From Podarcis liolepis (Eukaryota), in assembly GCA_965112155.1 (NCBI GenBank), contig OZ218102.1: 64,000 bases of DNA. One strand, 5' to 3'. Position 1 is the first letter of the stretch; each line of letters opens with the position of its first letter. This document shows positions 7,701-54,655 of this stretch, one piece after another. Made by a program: the position numbers and the translations under genes. The notes below the pieces were generated by a model. It saw nothing but the letters and a program-made list of their open reading frames with translations, did no database searches and was not told the origin of the DNA.

Positions 7701-7803
7701 CTTCCAAGGAGACCGGCTCAAAGAGTCCAAACTGCTCCAGCACCTTGACGAAGAGGACCAGAACCACCAACACGGCAATCATCTCCAGGCCTTCCAGGTT
7801 CAT
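7701..7803 (-). CDS. KCNIP2: KCNIP2 alternative first coding exon, KChIP2x/KIS-type N-terminal transmembrane segment (MNLEGLEMIAVLVVLVLFVKVLEQFGLFEPVSLE)
   Basis: ATG at 7803 (context ttcaccATG), 34 codons + 1 nt, then GAAG|GTAATG donor (phase 1). The peptide is nearly identical to the mammalian KChIP2x N-terminus as I recall it and homologous to the KChIP4a K-channel inactivation suppressor domain. Confidence 0.95.
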
Positions 7804-18840: not shown

Positions 18841-20345
18841 GGGATTCTTAAATGGCAATGTATGTTGCTTCACTTCCTGCACACTGTGGTGAGTCCCCCC
18901 TCCTGCTGCATATGTGGGAGGGGGCTACCCATTCTGCTGAGTGAGGCCCTGGACTCCTGCTCTGAAGACCTGCCCTGGCCCCACTGTGTGATGGACTACA
19001 TGTAGTTAGTGGGAGTTACTCCAGAAAGGGGGAAAGGAGAAAAAGCAGCAATAGTGCACTCTTAGGACTGGATTCAAATTTGCAAGAGCATCACACAAAT
19101 CAGGAAATGTGGCTGGGGCACTTTTGTTTGATCCTGCAGAAAGGACTTCAGTCTTGACTTATTGTCCTTATAATGGAAATTGCAATGACCTACTTCACAG
19201 GGATAGAGAGGTAAGTGAGATGACGAGTAGTAAAGCACTTGACATACTGAAGTGCTTCAGAAATTATTTATAACAAATAAGCGACATCACTCTGAATTCA
19301 TTAATAGCAAGTAGCAAATTCACAAATGAATTACCAACAAATGCTTCTGTCAGTATAGAATACTGAGTCCATAAATCTGGGGGTGGAAAGAAGAGATGAG
19401 ACTCTGAAATGTTGTCCAGTTTGCTTTCGCTTTGCTCTTGAGTTTTTAAGTGTCAGCACTTGGCAGGCACCCACCTACCCTCCCTCCCTCCCTCTTTCTC
19501 TCTCTGTTGGTTCCACCCTCTTAATGCATTGGGCCCCACAGCTTGCAGCCTCTTCTTTGCACCTTCTGATGCAGGGAACTTGGATGCACTGAAAGCTACA
19601 TTAAAGTTAGAAGGTATCGATTCTGTATTTCAGGAGTGGGCCAACCTGTGGCCCTCTGGATGTTTCTGGCATACAACTCCCATCATCCCTGATCATTGGG
19701 CCATACTGGCAGAGGGCTGATGGGAACTGGAGTCCAACAATGTCTGGAGGGCCACAGGTTCCCCATCCCTGTTGTATTTCGTGCGACACCTCTGTTGTCT
19801 GAAACACAGCTGCTGCTCCTGCTGAAGAAACCCCACTTCCTACTCCAAATGAGCATGGCAGGCAGGGTCCCTGCCAAGAAGCTGCATCTAAAAGCATTTG
19901 AAATAAATGGCACAGCAGGACTAATTGAAGGCATGGAGGACTTTGCCTGAAAATTACATTCTCAGTACGTTCACACTTAGGGAGATTGCCACTGGATGCT
20001 GAAGTCGGTCTCATTTGACTATAACAGCCAGAGTGTTAGATTGGAACTGGGGAGGCCTAGGCTGAAGTCCCCACTCAGTGTGGGTAGCAGCTATCTCTCA
20101 GCCTCACAGGGTTGTTGTGGAGAACCACATATACTGCCTTGAGCTCCTTGCAGGAAAGGTAAGATAGAAATGTAATGAACAAGGAAATGCGTATCAAGCA
20201 GCTAAGGACTATGGGCACACAGAATACCAGTGTAGAGTCTACAATGCATGGCTATTTGGAGCCCTGTGGTGGAGGAGGTGGGGGGGCAGAAATGCCCAGG
20301 ATTCCCCCATTTGGGCCGTATCCTGGCCCCTGTGCTCACAAGCAC

Positions 20346-20832
20346 ACCTAAGGATGTAAGAAGAGTCCTGCCAAAGGCTCCTGTAGCCCATTTCCTGCTC
20401 TCACACTGGCCAACCAGATGCCCATTATAGGAAACCCAAAAGCAGAACTTGAGTGCAATAGCACTCTCTCCATTTCTGATTCCCAGCAATTCTGATTCCC
20501 TCTAAAAGTGGAGGCAAAGCAGAGGCATCATGGCTAGGAGTCACTGGCTACAAGCCTTCTTCTCCAGGTGCTTGTCTGCTTTTAAAGCCATCCAGGTCGG
20601 TGGCCACGACTACATCTTGTGTGAGCAAACTGCATAGTTTAACTACATGACGTTGTGAAGAAGAACTTTCTTATGTTTGCCTTGAATCTTCTGATGTTGA
20701 GCTTCATTGGATGGTCCTGGAGTTCTGGTATTACAAAAGAGGGAGAAAAAATACTCACTTTCTCCACACCATGTATAATCTTAATACACCTCTTTCGTGT
20801 CCCCTGTACTTTGTCCTTTCTCTAAACTAAAA
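20346..20832 (-). mobile_element. Old CR1 3' fragment
   Basis: Reverse-complement similarity to the 2955-3597 element. Confidence 0.7.
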
Positions 20833-21047
20833 AAAAAAAAAAAAAGGCTGTCCTTCTGGAATGGATTTTCAGCCTCTACAGCAACTGGTACTATCCATTA
20901 TCATAACCAGGGTTGCCATCTTCTTTTTCTTTCAAAAGCACCATCTCCTTCTCAGGTCAGTTTCTCTCTCTCTCTCTCTGCATGTACCTTGCATCCCTCT
21001 CTATGCATGTCCCAGGCACAACTGCCTAGTAGTTCATTGGTCTAGCA

Positions 21048-21371
21048 CATGGGTAGGCAAACTAAGGCCTGGGGGCCAGATCCAGCCCAATCTCCTTCTA
21101 AATCCGGCCTGCGGATGGTCCAGGAAGCAGCGTGTTTTTACATGAGTAGAATGTGCCCTTTTATTTAAAATGCATCTCTGGGTTATTTGTGGGGCCTGCC
21201 TGGTGTTTTTACATGAATAGAATGTGTACTTTTATTTAAAATGCATCTCTGGGTTATTTGTGGGGCATATGAATTAATTCATTTCGCCCCCCCAAAAAAT
21301 ATAGTCCGGCCCCCCACAAGGTCTGAGGGACAGTGGACCAACCCCCTGCTGAAAAAGTTTGCTGACCCCTG
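21048..21371 (+). mobile_element. hAT non-autonomous element
   Basis: CATGGGTAGGCAAACT / AGTTTGCTGACCCCTG termini and a perfect 8-bp TSD GTCTAGCA. Confidence 0.92.
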
Positions 21372-22702
21372 GTCTAGCAGGTACGATTGCAGCCAAAGCC
21401 CATCCCCTCACTCTGTCTGTGGACAGCTCCAAACTAGTCCTTGTCTTCACCTTCACTTTTCTTAATCTGCCGTTTTGTGTATGTGTAAAATCATACTGTG
21501 CAACTGGCAGAAGAACCACCCTGATGAAGCTTCTCAGACAACAACAGAAACAAACTGGTCTGTCAAAAGAACTGAGAACTACAACATGATCCAAAGAATG
21601 GACTGCAAAGTGCCATTCTTTCCTACCCATAACCCCCACCTCCACAAACACTGCTGGCATTACAGAGTGCCAACATGATGGAAAGGAGCACAATATGTCC
21701 TCCAGTCATAAACTGTACGCTAAAGTTCAGCGAAGCTAAGGCAGTGGCATCCATCACATCACACCCACACCAACAACTTCTGGTGCTTATGGAACTCACA
21801 GCACCTAAGACCTATTCTTCCCACTTCAGAACTGGGGAAAGCTAATTTCTCTACTTCTCTATATTGTGAAAATCACTCAGAGTTCAGAATCAAAGGACAA
21901 TTATTCAGGGAGCATCCCATTCAGCAACAGTAACTCCAGAAGTCAACTAGAGCTGAACACACAAAGCATTGATCTCGGAGGCTCAATTCAGAAGCACAAA
22001 GATCATGGTGCTTTCATAATAATTAAGAGCATGTGCAGAGTGCTTTCTCCTACCACCAAGTAACCATAACTAGACACAACACAACTGGGTTTAGATGGGG
22101 GAAAACCCCACCACAGGTTAGAGAATGACATCCTTCTGTGGTTCTCCGAAGTCTCCCTTTAGGAATTTAAGCCCCAAGGCTGTCCATTAGACCACTGGTC
22201 TTCAGCTGGTGAGTTGGGACCCACTATTGGGTTGCAGCCGAATCCAAGGTGGGCCACAACAGGAGCACTACCACCATGCAAATATATGGTAAAAGATTAA
22301 GCAGTAGATCCCCAAATGAATGTTTGGACTAAAAGCGGGTCCTGGGTCTCAAAACGCTGAAGACTACTGCATTAGACCATGTGTTAATTTGGGAACATGG
22401 ATCAGTGCACAGGTATGGGGACCTTATAAGCTGAGGGGAACTGGGTAGCCCACTGCCGACATGTTAAGAGATCAGGGACCCAGGGAAGGAAGAAAAGTGC
22501 AGGTAGAGTAAAGCAATTGCAAAAGAAGAAAATGAGAAGACACTGCGGCTGCAAAGGAGCTGGGAGCCCCTAATCCTTGCTGCCTGCTATGCGGCAAGAA
22601 ACCCCTTTCCTCCCAATTTCCAGCCTTTCCACCTGGGGTTTGCCTTCAGCCCTTCCTTTCCACCAGACACCCTCCACCCCCCCCCCGCAGCCCACAATTT
22701 AC

Positions 22703-22820
22703 CTTCGATGCCACTGAGGATCTTGAAGCACTTGGTCGTGAACCAGTAGGACATGACCAGGAGGATGACGATAAGGGAGGCATACAAGAGGCTGTCACTG
22801 TGTGGCGTTTCCCTCTCCAT
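22703..22820 (-). CDS. KCNIP2: Putative additional KCNIP2 first coding exon with a transmembrane helix (MERETPHSDSLLYASLIVILLVMSYWFTTKCFKILSGIE)
   Basis: Strong Kozak context (gacATGG), GC3-rich codons, 39 codons + 1 nt, GAAG|GTAAAT phase-1 donor. Same strand and phase as the two recognised first exons, with a ~17-aa hydrophobic stretch followed by basic residues. Confidence 0.75.
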
Positions 22821-22982
22821 GTCTCCATGCCAGATGCGTTGCCCCCCCCCTGCTTTCTCTTGGCTCCCCCTGGTCCTCTGCTACATTGGTGCCAGCCTCT
22901 TCCAGGCAGATTCAGAGCCACTCTCGGCCCCGTGCACAAACGAGGCTCCCCAAACCAATTACATTAATTGTTCTCCTTCCAA

Positions 22983-23280
22983 CACATGGCGCCTGTCTAA
23001 AAATAACTGGCTGGCCCGGGGGGAGCCCAGTGGGGTGAGCATTGGAGAAGGGGAAGGTGAACTACTTGGGCAGGATCAGGACCTACTGTGTTGGATCTTC
23101 CTGTGTGAACTCACTACCCCCCACCCCACCCCACAAACAGAGGCCGCCTCTGTCCCACAGCAAGGGTTGCCACCTGGCAGTTTGGGGCTTCTCTCCCCCC
23201 CTCCCCACGGAGCTTTATATATAATGAATGGGAAGATATTAAATTGTGCTTAATTAAACTGCACATTAAATGAATGTGCA
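22983..23280 (-). promoter_or_regulatory. Putative promoter/5' region of the 22820 exon: MEF2 site, E-boxes, TATA box
   Basis: CTAAAAATAA (22997-23006, canonical MEF2 element), CACATG (22983-22988), CACCTG (23171-23176), minus-strand TATATAAA (23221-23214), and TAAT-rich non-repetitive sequence. Confidence 0.5.
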
Positions 23281-24415
23281 GAAGTAGCTGGGTTTCTGCT
23301 TTGCTTTTTGCCTGCTTGAAGAAGCAGTAACTCCCTCCACAGCTCAAATCTCCCCCAAGGTAAGATATGGAGGCCAGGAGTGTCCATCCTCACCTACGGC
23401 AACTTTTTATGGTCTTTCAAATTTAATTCTTACTCACACACACTTCCTTCTTCTCCCTAAGCCAACTGTTTAGAGTAGCAGGGCTCACTGTTCTGAAACC
23501 TTGGTTAGATATCAATACAGAGGTGTTTCGTGCCCCACCCAGGGAGTAAATGGTCGGCAGGGAGCTGCCCTATACTCTCAGACCATTGACTCATCTTGAT
23601 CAGCATTGTCTAGATCAGTCTTCTTCAAATGGGTCCTCAGATGTTGTTGGGCTACAACTCCCATCATCCCTGACCACTGGTTAAGCTGGCTGGGTATGAT
23701 AGGAGATGTAGTCCATCAACATCTGGAAGACACCCCTAGTCTAAATTCACTAGCAGCAGTCCTCCAAGCTTTCTGCCAGGGGTCTACCCCAGCCCTACCT
23801 ACAAACTTTGCTGCAACTCTTCTCCAGGAGGCATGAGATGCCAGTTAAGAAGCACTATGTCTCTGAAGTCTGTATGTGTGCACACATGTGTGCGCGCACG
23901 CATGAGTGTGATCAGTTAAGCTTCACCCACCTCCAGATGCCAAAATAGCTTTGCTCTCAAATTTCAGTAGTGACTGAAGGAAGTGTTTTACTAGCAGTAT
24001 TCATTGCATCAAAGCTGAGAGGCAGCAATCCAGCCTAGTGTTTAAAATGAAGGAAGCAAACTTTCTGGTTAGACAGAACGCTTCCTTAGCTGCAGGTGTT
24101 CTCAGCAACAAACAAACAATAGTTGGCTGATATCAAAGACAGGCATGGGGGAAAGCAATCTCTGTTAAACTAAAGGGGTACCTGGGAGTAACAGTCCAAA
24201 CACTTCATGTCACCACTGGGTAACCCACAGGAATAAACAGTGTCACCTTCTTCCATTTCAGAGAGGGAGAATTTTCCTCCTTCACTCACGAAGTTACTGC
24301 ATTTTTGCAACACAGACAGACCAAGAGGAAACAGGTGTATTTATCCTTAGGGGTCTGCAAGTCTCTCTCTAAACACTAACCAGATATGATTCACCTGAGG
24401 TGCATAAGGACTTAC

Positions 24416-24454
24416 CTTTAACACAACAAAGATAATCCCCCAAATATAAGTACC
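24416..24454 (-). CDS. KCNIP2: Candidate 39-nt cassette microexon (phase 1-1: G-YLYLGDYLCCVK)
   Basis: Acceptor tgctgcatttcag|, consensus donor AAG|GTAAGT, length a multiple of 3, and open in the phase used by the KCNIP first exons. Confidence 0.5.
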
Positions 24455-26668
24455 CTGAAATGCAGCATACACAAGCAACATTGCCTCCTCCCAGCCCTTC
24501 ACCACAATCCTTTTGTGATCTATATGTGAAGCAGATGACAATGTCCAGGGGACTGGGCTCAGTCGCTCACCCTTTGGCCTAATAATACTACTGTATAATA
24601 ATATAGCATCTTCAAATGTTCAAAGCACTTAGGATAACAAGAAACTGCCTTATACAGAATCAGAGCATTGGTCCATCTAGCTTAATATTGTCTACACTGA
24701 CAGTGGCTCTCCGGGGTTTCAGACAGCCTCTCCCTGCTGGGGATTGAACCTGCGACCTTCTGCATGCAAGGCAAATCCTCTACCACTGAGCTATGACTTT
24801 TCTTCGTGTAGCCTGTGTTGTCATAAGTGCACCACTGTGCTGTCACCTTTGCACGCAGTCAGAGTCTAAGAACCAGGTGTCATCACCCCACTTATCTCCC
24901 TCTATATGTAAAAGAAAGCTGTGAGAACACACACACACACACACACACACCCCAGTTCCCTGGCGAGACAGTGCTGGCACTGAGCTAAAATTAAACAGTC
25001 ACCCACCTGCCTGGGTAAAAATAGCAGACAGAGTTGCACATCGGCAAGACTTCAAGCACAGCCACTAATTTTCCATGCCATTGTGAATGTGTGGCCCCAT
25101 GACCCAAGGGCATGGAGTCATATTCTGCAGCCTGCCCCCATCAAGCACTGTGCAGGATGGGTTGCCAGATCACAAAAAGCCATTTGCATTCAGGTGTTGT
25201 TGTTTTTAAAAACCCAAAACTCAGGATAGCTGCCTTCTTCTGCAAGCCCAAGGGAGACTGGCGGTACTTGGAGAATATGACCTGAAGGCTCTGGACACCA
25301 GAGCATCCTTTATCGCTCTTTCCCCAGAAATAAGCCAGAAATGCAGGCAGCATTTTCTGGATACCACACTGTTCAAGACCATCACAAAACACTCTGTCCT
25401 TTCTCAGCAGATTCCCTGATTTGATCTAGAGAGGGAAAAGGTGCTCCCAGGAAGCGCTTGCTCTTTGCCAAGACAGCCAGAACCACCGCAGGGAACAGCA
25501 AGGGAGGCAGGCAACTCCATCAAGGCCTCTCTTTAGGATTCTGACTGTCCTCGAATCAGCTGACTGAGGGAAGAACTGCGTGCCAAGAACAATCCTGCCC
25601 TCTTGACACAAACATTTCCACCTGCTCTTTTCCTAGATACTGTATAACCTTGAGGAGGAGGGAGCACTTCCAGGGAGGGGCTTCTCTCCAGAATCTGTAG
25701 GTAGAACTATATAACTGCGTTATAAATACTGTAACTTTAAGAACTGGTTCCTGAGCTTGCTGTTTCCTTCCTCCCTCCCCACCCTTTTTCCTTCTGTGCC
25801 ATGTCTTCTTATAGAGTCCCTGTCCTCAGGCTTACAATCCTACTACTGGTTATTGTAAGCTGCCCTGGGATCCCATTTATCTGAACAGCATAAATATTAT
25901 ATATATATTCCAACACAATCCCATCTCTGTCAGTTATGGGTTAATTACACATACCTCAGCTTTGATTTCTTTCTGAAATAGGGCAATGGATCACATGGAC
26001 CATTTCATAGTTATATAACAGCAACAGATTCCTTAAAACGCAACTCAGCCAGCAGCGGAACGTGGGTCCTACAGAATTTGAATCTGCCTGCGCCGTCTGT
26101 TCAGCTAAGGCAATGCTCAGGAAATGAGGGTTCATCACTGATGACATGGGCGCCCTTTCCTGCAGCTGGGAGCTCACTCACCTAGATTACCTGGCCTGGT
26201 CAGGCTGATCTAATGATGGCTAATACCTTCTTCTTCTTCTTCTTTTGCTTTATCCATTAGGAGAGTTAAATTTAGGTCACAGCTGAATCTTATTACAGAG
26301 CTGCTAATCAGAGTGGGAGCTGATTATTAATAAAGCACAGCCAAATATTGACAAAAGGCTATTTTTGGCTACAGATGTTACTGTTTCAATCTGGTTAATT
26401 GATCCAGAATCATTTCTCTTCGCCCAGTGTCACAGGGAGCTCCCAGCATTCCAGGGCACTTTTAACAGGAGAGTCTGTGCTTTATTTAGACTGGGCCCAG
26501 CTCTAATGGCATGTGAATGAATAATACAGAAGAGAGCACCTTAGGGCATGTGCAGAGTGCCTTTCATTCATTAGCCACAATCTGCTTCTGCACACCTAGT
26601 CCAGACTGTTTTATTTCATATGCATTAATGCAACTTGCTCTTGACACAGTAATAGTCCATTAGCAGTA

Positions 26669-31210: not shown

Positions 31211-31298
31211 CTTGAGACAGGGTCCCCGTGACCAGCTGGTAGAAGAAACGGATCGCCCGCCCCAGCTGCCTCTTGCACCGTCGCTGGCAGTGAGTCAT
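31211..31298 (-). CDS. KCNIP2: KCNIP2 alternative first coding exon, KChIP2e-like basic/Cys N-terminus (MTHCQRRCKRQLGRAIRFFYQLVTGTLSQ)
   Basis: ATG at 31298, 29 codons + 1 nt, CAAG|GTAGGC donor (phase 1). The CxxRC...YQLVTGxLS pattern matches recalled human KChIP2e (MNRCPRRC...YQLVTGSLSP) and the paralogous KCNIP1/KCNIP4 MSGCxKRC exons. Confidence 0.92.
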
Positions 31299-52624: not shown

Positions 52625-54655
52625 AATATTAAGATAAAATCGCTCAGATTCAGGAAGAGGTAGACTCCACCGTGGGAGCAGGGCCGGGGTGGGAGAGTGC
52701 TAGAGTCCTGTCTAGTCAAGTTGCATGGGATCACTTCTAATCTGTTACCTCCGAGGATGTGGACAGGCTGCTTGGACGAGTGAAACCAACCACCTGTCTC
52801 CTTGATCCTTGCCCATCCTGGCTTATAAAAGCTAGCCAGGAAGGACTGGGCAATGAGCATCACAGGGTGGTGAATGCTTCTGTCTGTGAGGGAGCCTTCC
52901 CAGACCTGCTGAAAGAGGCGGTCATTAAACTGCTTCTTTAAAAAACATCTCTAGACCCGGCCAATATGGCCAACTATCACCCAGTCTCAAATCTTCCATT
53001 GTTGGGCAAGGTGATTGAGCGAGTGGTTGCTGAACAACACCAGGCACGCCTGGAAAAGGCAGACCACTTGGATCCCTTCAAGTCAGGATTCAGGCCTCAT
53101 CATGGGACTGAAACTGCCTTGGTCGCGCTGGCTGATGATCTCCAGCGGGCTAGGGACAAAGGTGAGAGCTGTTTCCTAGTTCTGCTGGATCTCTCAGCAG
53201 CTTTTGATATCATGAACCATAACATCCTTCTGGACTGTCTAGAGGGGCTGGGAGCTGGGGGCACTGTTATACAGTGGTTCCACTCCTTCCTCCTGAGCCG
53301 TGTTCAGAAAGTGGGGGGGATGGGTGTTCAGACCCCTGGGCTCTCACTTGTGGGGTGCCTCAGGGTTCTGTCCTCTCCGCCATGTTTTTCAATATTTGCA
53401 TGCAGCCGCTGGGAGAGATCATCAGGGGGTTTGGGTTGGGTGTTCATCAATATGCAGATGATACACAGCTCTACCTCTCTTTCAAATCAGAACCAGTGAA
53501 GGCGGTGAAGGTCCTGTGTGAGTGTCTGGAGGCAGTTGGAGGATGGATGGTAGCTAACACATTGAGGCTGAATCCTGACAAGACAGAAGTACTGTTTTGG
53601 GAGGACAGGAGGTGGGCAGGTGTGGAGGACTTCCTGGTCCTGAATGGGGTAACTGTGCCCCTGAAGGACCAGGTGCGCAGCCTGGGAGTCATTTTGGACT
53701 CACAGCTGTCCATGGAGGCGCAGATTAATTCTCTGTCCAGGGCAGCTTCATCTGGTACGCAGGCTGAGACCCTATCTGCCCACTACTGTCTTGCCAGAGT
53801 GGTGCATGCTCTAGTTATCTCTCGCTTGGATTACTGCAATGCGCTCTATGTGGAGGTACCTTTGAAGGTGACCCGGAAACTACAACTAATCCAGAATGTG
53901 ACAGCTAGACTGGTGACTGGGAGCAGCCACCAAGACCACATAACCACAATGAAAGATCTACATTGGCTCCCAGTATGTTTCCGAGCACAATTCAAAGGGT
54001 TAGTGCTGACCTTTAAAGCCCTAAACACAGGGCCCTGCAGAGCCAGGCAGAGGCCCGGGCCAGGTAGATAATGTGCCCCCCCTTTTTCACCCTGGGGATA
54101 ACTGAAGTCTTATAAATAAGTAAGTATATAAATAATTTTCACAAAAGTTATGCTGACAAATAATTTTATTTCAAGGCTTGAACCGTATCTGCATGTAAAG
54201 AAAAAATGGAAAATATAGATAAATATGCTGACCGAGGCCCCCTTTGGAATCAGAGGCCTGGGCCAAGTGGCCCATATGGCCCCCCCCTCTGTCTGGGCCT
54301 GCCTAAATGGCCTCGGTCCAGTATACCTGAAGGAGTGTCTCCACCTCCCATCGTTCTGCCCGGCCGAGGGCCTTCTGGCGGTTCCATGCCTGCAAGAAGC
54401 CAGGTTACAGGGAACCAGGCAGAGGGCCTTCTCGGTAGTGGCACCCGCCCTGTGGAATGCCCTCCCACCAGATGTCAAAGAGAAAAACAACTACCAGACT
54501 TTTAGAAGACATCTGAAGGTAGCCCTATTTAGGGAAGCTTTTAATGACTGATGTTTTAATTTATTTTTAATCTTTTGTTGGAAGCCGCCTAGAGTGGCTG
54601 GGGAAACCCAGCCAGATGGGCGGGGTATAAATAATAAATTATTATTATCATTATT
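52625..54655 (+). mobile_element. L2-clade LINE, 5'-truncated, with a frameshifted reverse transcriptase
   Basis: Motifs NYHPVSNLP, SGFRPHHGTETAL, LLDLSAAFD, GVPQGSVL, QYADDTQLY, LNPDKTE, SRLDYCN and LHWLP spread over several frames; AT-rich tail. Confidence 0.95.
54028..54301. mobile_element. hAT MITE nested in the L2
   Basis: CAGGGCCC...GGGCCTG ends; flanks cctaaaca/cctaaatg; L2 sequence resumes after it. Confidence 0.8.

Follow-up and report, generated by a model that had tools for sequence, protein, structure and literature searches.

The 64,000-nucleotide stretch of Podarcis liolepis DNA analyzed here (assembly GCA_965112155.1, contig OZ218102.1; hereafter the window) probably contains a genuine coding exon of KCNIP2 that is used alternatively and is most likely a first exon; it would splice to the core of the gene and yield a membrane-tethered KChIP2 with a new N-terminus. 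The exon lies on the minus strand at 22703..22820, and its predicted product, MERETPHSDSLLYASLIVILLVMSYWFTTKCFKILSGIE, is most likely a second, non-KIS transmembrane N-terminal variant of KChIP2. That it is a first exon, which we also consider most likely, rests on gene models from other species and on the non-coding behavior of the upstream flank. The exon is deeply conserved and uncharacterized, yet it is already present in the public automated annotation of birds and alligator.

Read on the minus strand from 22820 to 22703, the 118-nt exon consists of 39 codons, beginning with ATG, and one additional G, after which the intron begins with gtaaat (phase 1). The start codon (22818..22820) stands in the context gacATGG, with G at both -3 and +4, and the GT of the splice donor (GAAG/gtaaat) occupies 22701..22702. 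The GC content at third codon positions (GC3) is 0.82, compared with 0.37 at codon positions 1 and 2. Codons 11-27 (22740..22790) encode the hydrophobic core LLYASLIVILLVMSYWF, a predicted membrane helix, which is followed by TTKCFK; codon 31 (22728..22730) encodes a juxtamembrane Cys within the motif K/R-C-F-K. The original prediction had named the same span, a strong Kozak context, GC3-rich codons, a phase-1 donor and a hydrophobic core followed by KCFK, and all of these are found as described, with the strand being minus. The window sequence around the exon contains no N.

Upstream of the start codon, the nearest in-frame stop is a TAG at 22883-22881, and no in-frame ATG lies in between. 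An out-of-frame ATG is located at 22826..22828 on the minus strand, 8 nt before the start codon, and it also has G at -3 and +4. Its frame runs without a stop across the entire exon, over 42 codons up to the donor, and this ATG would compete for initiating ribosomes if the 5' UTR includes it. The residues that precede Met1 in relatives (H-G, Y-G, D-G) are compatible with the same upstream ATG, as seen at the protein level. The presumed 5' UTR also contains a run of 9 G (22842..22850 on the minus strand; 9 C on the plus strand) of variable length, with a weak, possible in-frame AG acceptor at its 5' end. Among the read-derived contigs described below, one from run X2 lacks 2 letters of this run, and the alignment of the contig from run X1 breaks inside it. 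There is no CpG island around the exon (observed/expected ratio of 0.21 over 22001-24000) and no mapped transcription start.

The conservation of the exon was examined by a phmmer search with the 39 residues against 1.84 billion representative proteins, a library that holds one protein per 50% cluster and called ORFs only. The search gave 12 matches at E<=0.001, ten of which had E<=1e-10 and spanned all query residues from 1 to 39. The remaining two matches (E 1.3e-4) are unrelated repeat proteins. In total, the exon is carried by 61 database proteins, making 62 rows when aligned with the window, and Met1 and Cys31 are invariant in all 62 of them. The bird form, MERTSLHNDSLLYASLIAILLLISYWFTTRCFKIISGIE, is identical to the window exon at 30 of 39 residues (77%); for the alligator form, identity is 75.6% over 41 aa. 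The differences between lizard-type and bird-type sequences are conservative replacements (V/A, V/L, M/I, K/R, L/I), and the 39 codons are without any indel, unlike the flanks of the exon, which do carry indels.

Most of the rows were called as ORFs on genomic contigs without splicing, and these ORFs continue past the donor into the intron. At least 19 residues after the donor are present in 53 rows, of which 33 are distinct and 32 are bird-type (496 pairs). The mean identity between these 32 bird-type ORFs is 99.4% within the exon compared with 42.2% over the next 19 residues, and it is 26.3% over residues 7-19 after the donor. In all read-through rows, Glu39 is followed by Gly, as G/GT requires. 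A near relative, P0001 (from Logan), has 39 residues that are 100% identical to the window exon. Upstream of the exon, it is only 65% like the window, and this match is gapped, lies in another frame and meets a stop on the window side; downstream, the two sequences part immediately after the donor. Hence, between-species similarity ends at the GT of the donor. As conservation begins at the ATG, holds one frame for 39 codons and ends at the donor, the exon behaves as coding sequence. Frame and donor are both kept in birds and alligator, and P0001 is the only non-archosaur relative found. The hydrophobic character of the reading frame is by itself not beyond chance, as the window has 598 ORFs that start with ATG and span 30 or more codons, and 12 of these contain a 17-mer just as hydrophobic within their first 45 residues; it is the conservation that puts the exon beyond chance.

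The representative phmmer search returned no mammalian, amphibian or fish matches, which is a weak negative given a library of one protein per 50% cluster. Two word-index protein searches returned only bird-type ORFs (16 of 16 candidates) in one case and the query alone (1 of 1) in the other. As the word-index search also missed P0001, which fits its length range, such blanks say little about other taxa. In a look-alike search of the ESM Atlas with the 39 residues, the top-scoring entries were unnamed clusters (0.81), which offered no lead, and a metagenome scan for the DNA of the bird exon matched its pattern in 593 stretches, none of which was a relative.

Two other KCNIP2 first exons are found on the minus strand of the window. 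A motif scan located a KIS-type (KChIP2x) first exon at 7701..7803, which encodes MNLEGLEMIAVLVVLVLFVKVLEQFGLFEPVSLE plus 1 base and ends in phase 1 at the donor G/gtaatg. Residues 19-21 of this exon are VKV. According to a 2014 review of KChIPs, this motif is VKV in KChIP2x, VKL in KChIP4a and IAV in KChIP3x (PMC3973911), and the KIS exon of the window is thus assigned to the KChIP2 type. The other is a 2g-like first exon at 31211..31298, which encodes MTHCQRRCKRQLGRAIRFFYQLVTGTLSQ plus 1 base, also in phase 1 (donor AAG/gtaggc), and matches the start of the Turdus rufiventris model P0006 with 86% identity over 29 aa. This 2g-like exon is 52% identical to the alligator model and contains two Cys spaced C-x-x-x-C. 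In minus-strand order, the 2g-like exon is followed after 8.4 kb by the candidate exon and after a further 14.9 kb by the KIS exon, with the core coming last, and all three exons in the window share phase 1. No core EF-hand exons and no canonical KChIP2a-type exons 1-3 were detected in the window by motif scan or by tblastn with bird models, so the acceptor partner of the candidate exon lies beyond the window. The first core exon shared by the variants starts with DSVEDEF in birds. None of the three N-terminal exons is represented by a Pfam family. The assignment of the candidate to the 5' coding part of KCNIP2 that was originally proposed is borne out by this position, on the strand of the gene and between two first exons of the same phase, and by bird KCNIP2 models that start with the exon.

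The original suspicion that the exon may exist in automated gene models proved right, as it is present in models from 8 named species, i.e., 7 birds and Alligator sinensis. It is carried by Kv channel-interacting protein 2 isoform X6 of Tyto alba, KCNIP2 isoform X2 of Cygnus olor, KCNIP2 of Phasianus colchicus (UniRef A0A669QBH7) and the KChIP2 model P0028 of Alligator sinensis, and by hypothetical proteins of Bambusicola thoracicus, Hirundo rustica, Turdus rufiventris and Mimus melanotis. At least 6 of the 8 models leave the exon exactly after Glu39. The models of Tyto alba, Cygnus olor and Phasianus colchicus begin at the Met of the exon and join the core directly (SGIE/DSVEDEF), although the two RefSeq models have an odd insertion of 30-odd residues in the core and the Phasianus model is without part of it. 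The Alligator (P0028) and Turdus (P0006) models put the 2g-like exon before the candidate exon, and the Mimus model continues into unrelated sequence. Overall, the bird and alligator models disagree on the sequence both 5' and 3' of the exon, and the protein searches gave no squamate-type gene model containing it. NCBI isoforms with numbered X designations normally need transcript or RNA-seq alignments, and the X status of the owl and swan models would in that case amount to indirect transcript support in these two species.

In the Bambusicola and Hirundo models, the exon is spliced into the KIS exon at an internal AG (SGIE/GLEM), and the resulting protein has two tandem hydrophobic segments. 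A phase-compatible AG just after MNLE (ctggaAG/GCCTGGAG) is also present in the KIS exon of the window, at 7789-7803 on the minus strand. This tandem splice from the candidate exon into the KIS exon is probably a prediction artifact. We rejected a reading with two membrane anchors, because a protein that crosses the membrane twice would have its core on the wrong side, and because the models in question are hypothetical proteins.

Evidence at the read level was sought in sequencing runs. Of the 24 runs listed, 13 cover a 401-nt stretch around the exon in whole or in part, and none of these 13 is on record as RNA. Four runs were aligned to 19800-25799, including X16 and X17, which are bulk RNA-seq of organism A and of which about 12% each was read. 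Run X1 gave a 194-nt contig on 22699-22848, which is unspliced and extends 4 nt into the intron, and had low depth in 17 of 30 bins. Run X2 gave 151-nt contigs on 22692-22842 and 22821-22973, likewise unspliced and reaching 11 nt into the intron. The contigs of both X1 and X2 look like genomic DNA. Neither X16 nor X17 had any depth over 22600-22999 or over the rest of the unique sequence in the 6-kb stretch, and none was seen over 24400-24599; depth was found only over the repeats at 21000-21399, 23600-23799 and 24600-24799, mostly at 90-95% likeness. No spliced reads from 22703 were seen in X1, X2, X16 or X17, and none of the Logan-derived ORFs among the 61 proteins contains a spliced junction to the core. 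For runs of unspecified tissue, and with the core exons outside the window, the zero depth in X16 and X17 neither supports nor refutes expression. KCNIP2 itself may be off in both runs, which have no unique coverage anywhere in the 6 kb. Transcription of the exon in Podarcis liolepis is thus something that we infer.

The three repeats mentioned above are present in high copy number, with a depth of hundreds in the RNA runs and a contig word depth of tens of thousands. Many reads switch strand at 23664-23681, which suggests a palindromic or hairpin repeat unit. Elsewhere in the window, two overlapping ORFs in different frames at 52966-54071 on the plus strand match Pfam RVT_1 (E 9e-10 and 5.6e-15) and represent a frameshifted retroelement fragment.

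The exon might be a real coding exon that serves as an internal cassette after the 2g-like first exon (31298-31211), which would place the hydrophobic segment about 40 residues into the protein, as the Turdus P0006 and Alligator P0028 models with the 2g-like exon in front imply. The AG at 22851-22850, together with the 29 nt that follow, would also keep the phase-1 donor of the 2g-like exon in frame with the ATG. However, the sequence upstream of this AG is purine-rich and without a polypyrimidine tract, and the G-run in which it lies varies in length between relatives. Nor is the frame before the ATG kept between the window and P0001, with the window having a stop in frame at codon -21, while Met1 itself is invariant and the three models that reach the core cleanly all begin at it. 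A cytosolic N-terminal extension would moreover clash with an anchor whose N-terminus faces out. We therefore consider the internal cassette unlikely, and a first exon with its own start codon remains the preferred reading.

Two further explanations would leave the lizard exon without a protein product, and both are improbable. One is that the exon is functional in archosaurs and a silent relic in Podarcis liolepis. The zero RNA depth in two runs and the competing upstream ATG would be in line with this, although these runs are the ones without unique coverage anywhere in the 6 kb, where the gene itself may be off. Against a relic, reading frame, start codon and donor have all stayed intact, and the 39 residues are identical in P0001 despite diverged flanks, which points to ongoing purifying selection; we regard such a loss as quite improbable. 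The other explanation, that the sequence is a conserved non-coding element such as a KCNIP2 promoter or enhancer, open in one frame by accident and taken up by gene models as an ORF ending in a GT, is to our judgment highly improbable. It would account for the lack of spliced reads in the runs examined, and it draws on the fact that several of the models with the exon are plainly ab initio and mutually contradictory and that equally hydrophobic ORFs arise by chance. A non-coding element would nevertheless not be expected to show conservation that starts at the ATG and ends at the donor, conservative in-frame replacements with indels confined to the flanks, a GC3 far above the GC content of the other two positions, and the phase of the other first exons.

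From the arrangement of the sequence, translation of the variant would begin at the exon's own start codon at 22820, and the phase-1 donor at 22703/22702 would be joined to the first shared core exon, with the KIS exon 14.9 kb downstream being skipped. The new N-terminus would then consist of about 10 mostly acidic residues, a hydrophobic helix of 17-19 residues (11-27/29), the K/R-C-F-K motif and a short linker that leads into the EF hands of the core. The mean Kyte-Doolittle hydrophobicity of the candidate is 2.22 for the 17-mer (11-27) and 1.92 for the 19-mer (11-29), compared with 2.81 and 2.36, respectively, for the KIS exon of the window. The core follows the helix after only about 10 residues, in the candidate as in the KIS exon. 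Hydrophobic runs as short as 17-19 residues are commoner in proteins that reside in the ER and Golgi; the length of the run is a suggestive hint of such a residence.

The N-terminal flank of the candidate, MERETPHSDS, has a net charge of -2, and the C-terminal flank begins with TTKCFK, which provides K30 and K33. Based on this charge distribution and the positive-inside rule, the short N-terminus is predicted to be translocated, facing the ER lumen or the cell exterior, with the rest of the protein being cytosolic and the core binding the Kv4 N-terminus. This is also the sole orientation that lets the EF-hand core bind the cytoplasmic N-terminus of Kv4. The same orientation has been shown for KChIP4a, whose N-terminus was found to be extracellular by biotinylation of N-terminal cysteine mutants, as reported in the review (PMC3973911). 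An AlphaFold2 model of Cygnus olor isoform X2, built from a 6-row alignment, had a mean pLDDT of 50, with residues 1-56 below 50; it shows a helix that spans residues 2-37 in the bird sequence at pLDDT 34-39, which is uninformative on topology or docking. The charges fit the original description, in which the protein passes the membrane once, keeps its C-terminus in the cytosol and has a Cys next to the membrane. The Cys is found in every row, and the membrane insertion and topology are what we infer from these features. Placed at the cytosolic side of the membrane, Cys31 would be a candidate palmitoylation site. A KChIP2 tethered in this way would be expected to alter the trafficking and/or the inactivation of Kv4, with the direction of the effect not being predictable.

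The candidate exon differs in sequence from the known membrane-spanning KChIP variants. BLASTP of the 39 residues against the window's own KIS exon gave no alignment at E<=100, in agreement with the earlier claim that the exon is non-KIS. Homology to KIS was rejected on this basis, and the exon also lacks both the MNLEGLEM start and a VKL/VKV motif. Its residues 16-21 are LIVILL (LIAILL in birds) and are followed by VMS (LIS in birds), and not by V-K-L/V. LIVILL is one residue off LIVIVL, given as the ER-retention motif of KChIP4a in the review (PMC3973911), which is a likeness of low specificity within a membrane helix. Like the KIS-type exons of KChIP4a, KChIP2x and KChIP3x, the candidate is a phase-1 and probable first exon with a predicted membrane-spanning segment, a short linker to the EF hands and an expected N-out/C-in orientation. 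It differs from them in having no detectable similarity to the KIS sequence, and the true KChIP2x exon is a separate one at 7803-7701.

The comparison with KChIP4e, which can be made by described architecture and not by sequence, brings the candidate closer to a known variant. In the review, KChIP4e is considered "considerably different" from its paralogues of KIS type; its putative membrane segment covers residues 10-32, and its membrane insertion is itself disputed (PMC3973911). Like the candidate, KChIP4e is encoded by an alternative first exon, next to which the same KCNIP gene carries one of KIS type, and its sequence differs from KIS. According to the review, its membrane segment starts from about residue 10, and not at residue 3, leaving a longer N-terminal stretch outside (PMC3973911); the segment of the candidate starts at residue 11. 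KChIP4e differs in belonging to another gene, the candidate being in KCNIP2, and in having LLH at the position homologous to VKL (PMC3973911), to which nothing similar is evident in the candidate exon. By analogy of architecture, the candidate exon thus appears closer to KChIP4e than to KIS. The review describes different effects for the two kinds: KChIP4a, 2x and 3x keep Kv4 in the ER and slow its inactivation, whereas KChIP4e gives higher surface expression of Kv4 and does not slow inactivation (PMC3973911). The closest counterparts in databases are the orthologous exons near the KChIP2 N-terminus in the bird and alligator KCNIP2 models, which are 77% and 76% identical to that of the window; these models are predictions, several of them visibly faulty (core insertion, missing core exon, KIS fusion).

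The mammalian variants of KChIP2 listed in the 2014 review are 2aL, 2a, 2b, 2c, 2g and 2x only, out of a total of 17 KChIP variants (PMC3973911). The original statement that the exon is not among the characterized mammalian KChIP2 isoforms is consistent with this list. A 2023 review, in the parts available to us, gives only KChIP4a and KChIP3x as membrane-spanning (PMC10377897). We found no description of the exon in the literature searched, although the figures or supplements of earlier KChIP isoform papers might list it, and a 16-residue stretch of the bird exon was not found in the text of the papers searched. The gain in knowledge is modest in that the exon is already in automated annotation and transmembrane KChIPs are known as a type of molecule.

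The N-terminal variants of KChIPs decide whether Kv4 channels arrive at the surface and at what rate these channels inactivate. In the heart, the main KChIP is KChIP2, and a second transmembrane KChIP2 would add one subunit to the set that mammalian reviews count as complete at 17. Switching between N-terminal KChIP variants can also define neuron types, according to a study in eLife (2020, PMC7269670). The exon has been kept nearly unchanged across the window species, a crocodilian and birds, and it is absent from the mammalian lists; it also bears on the origin of the alternative first exons in the four KCNIP genes. A tentative and rather doubtful extension of our results is that this exon represents the KChIP4e class within KCNIP2, in which case two unrelated kinds of transmembrane first exon (KIS-type and 4e-type) would be ancestral in the vertebrate KChIP gene, with sauropsids having kept both in KCNIP2 and mammals having lost the second. 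If this is true, the heart and brain of sauropsids would be provided with a palmitoylatable, membrane-spanning KChIP2 that tunes Kv4 currents differently from KChIP2x.
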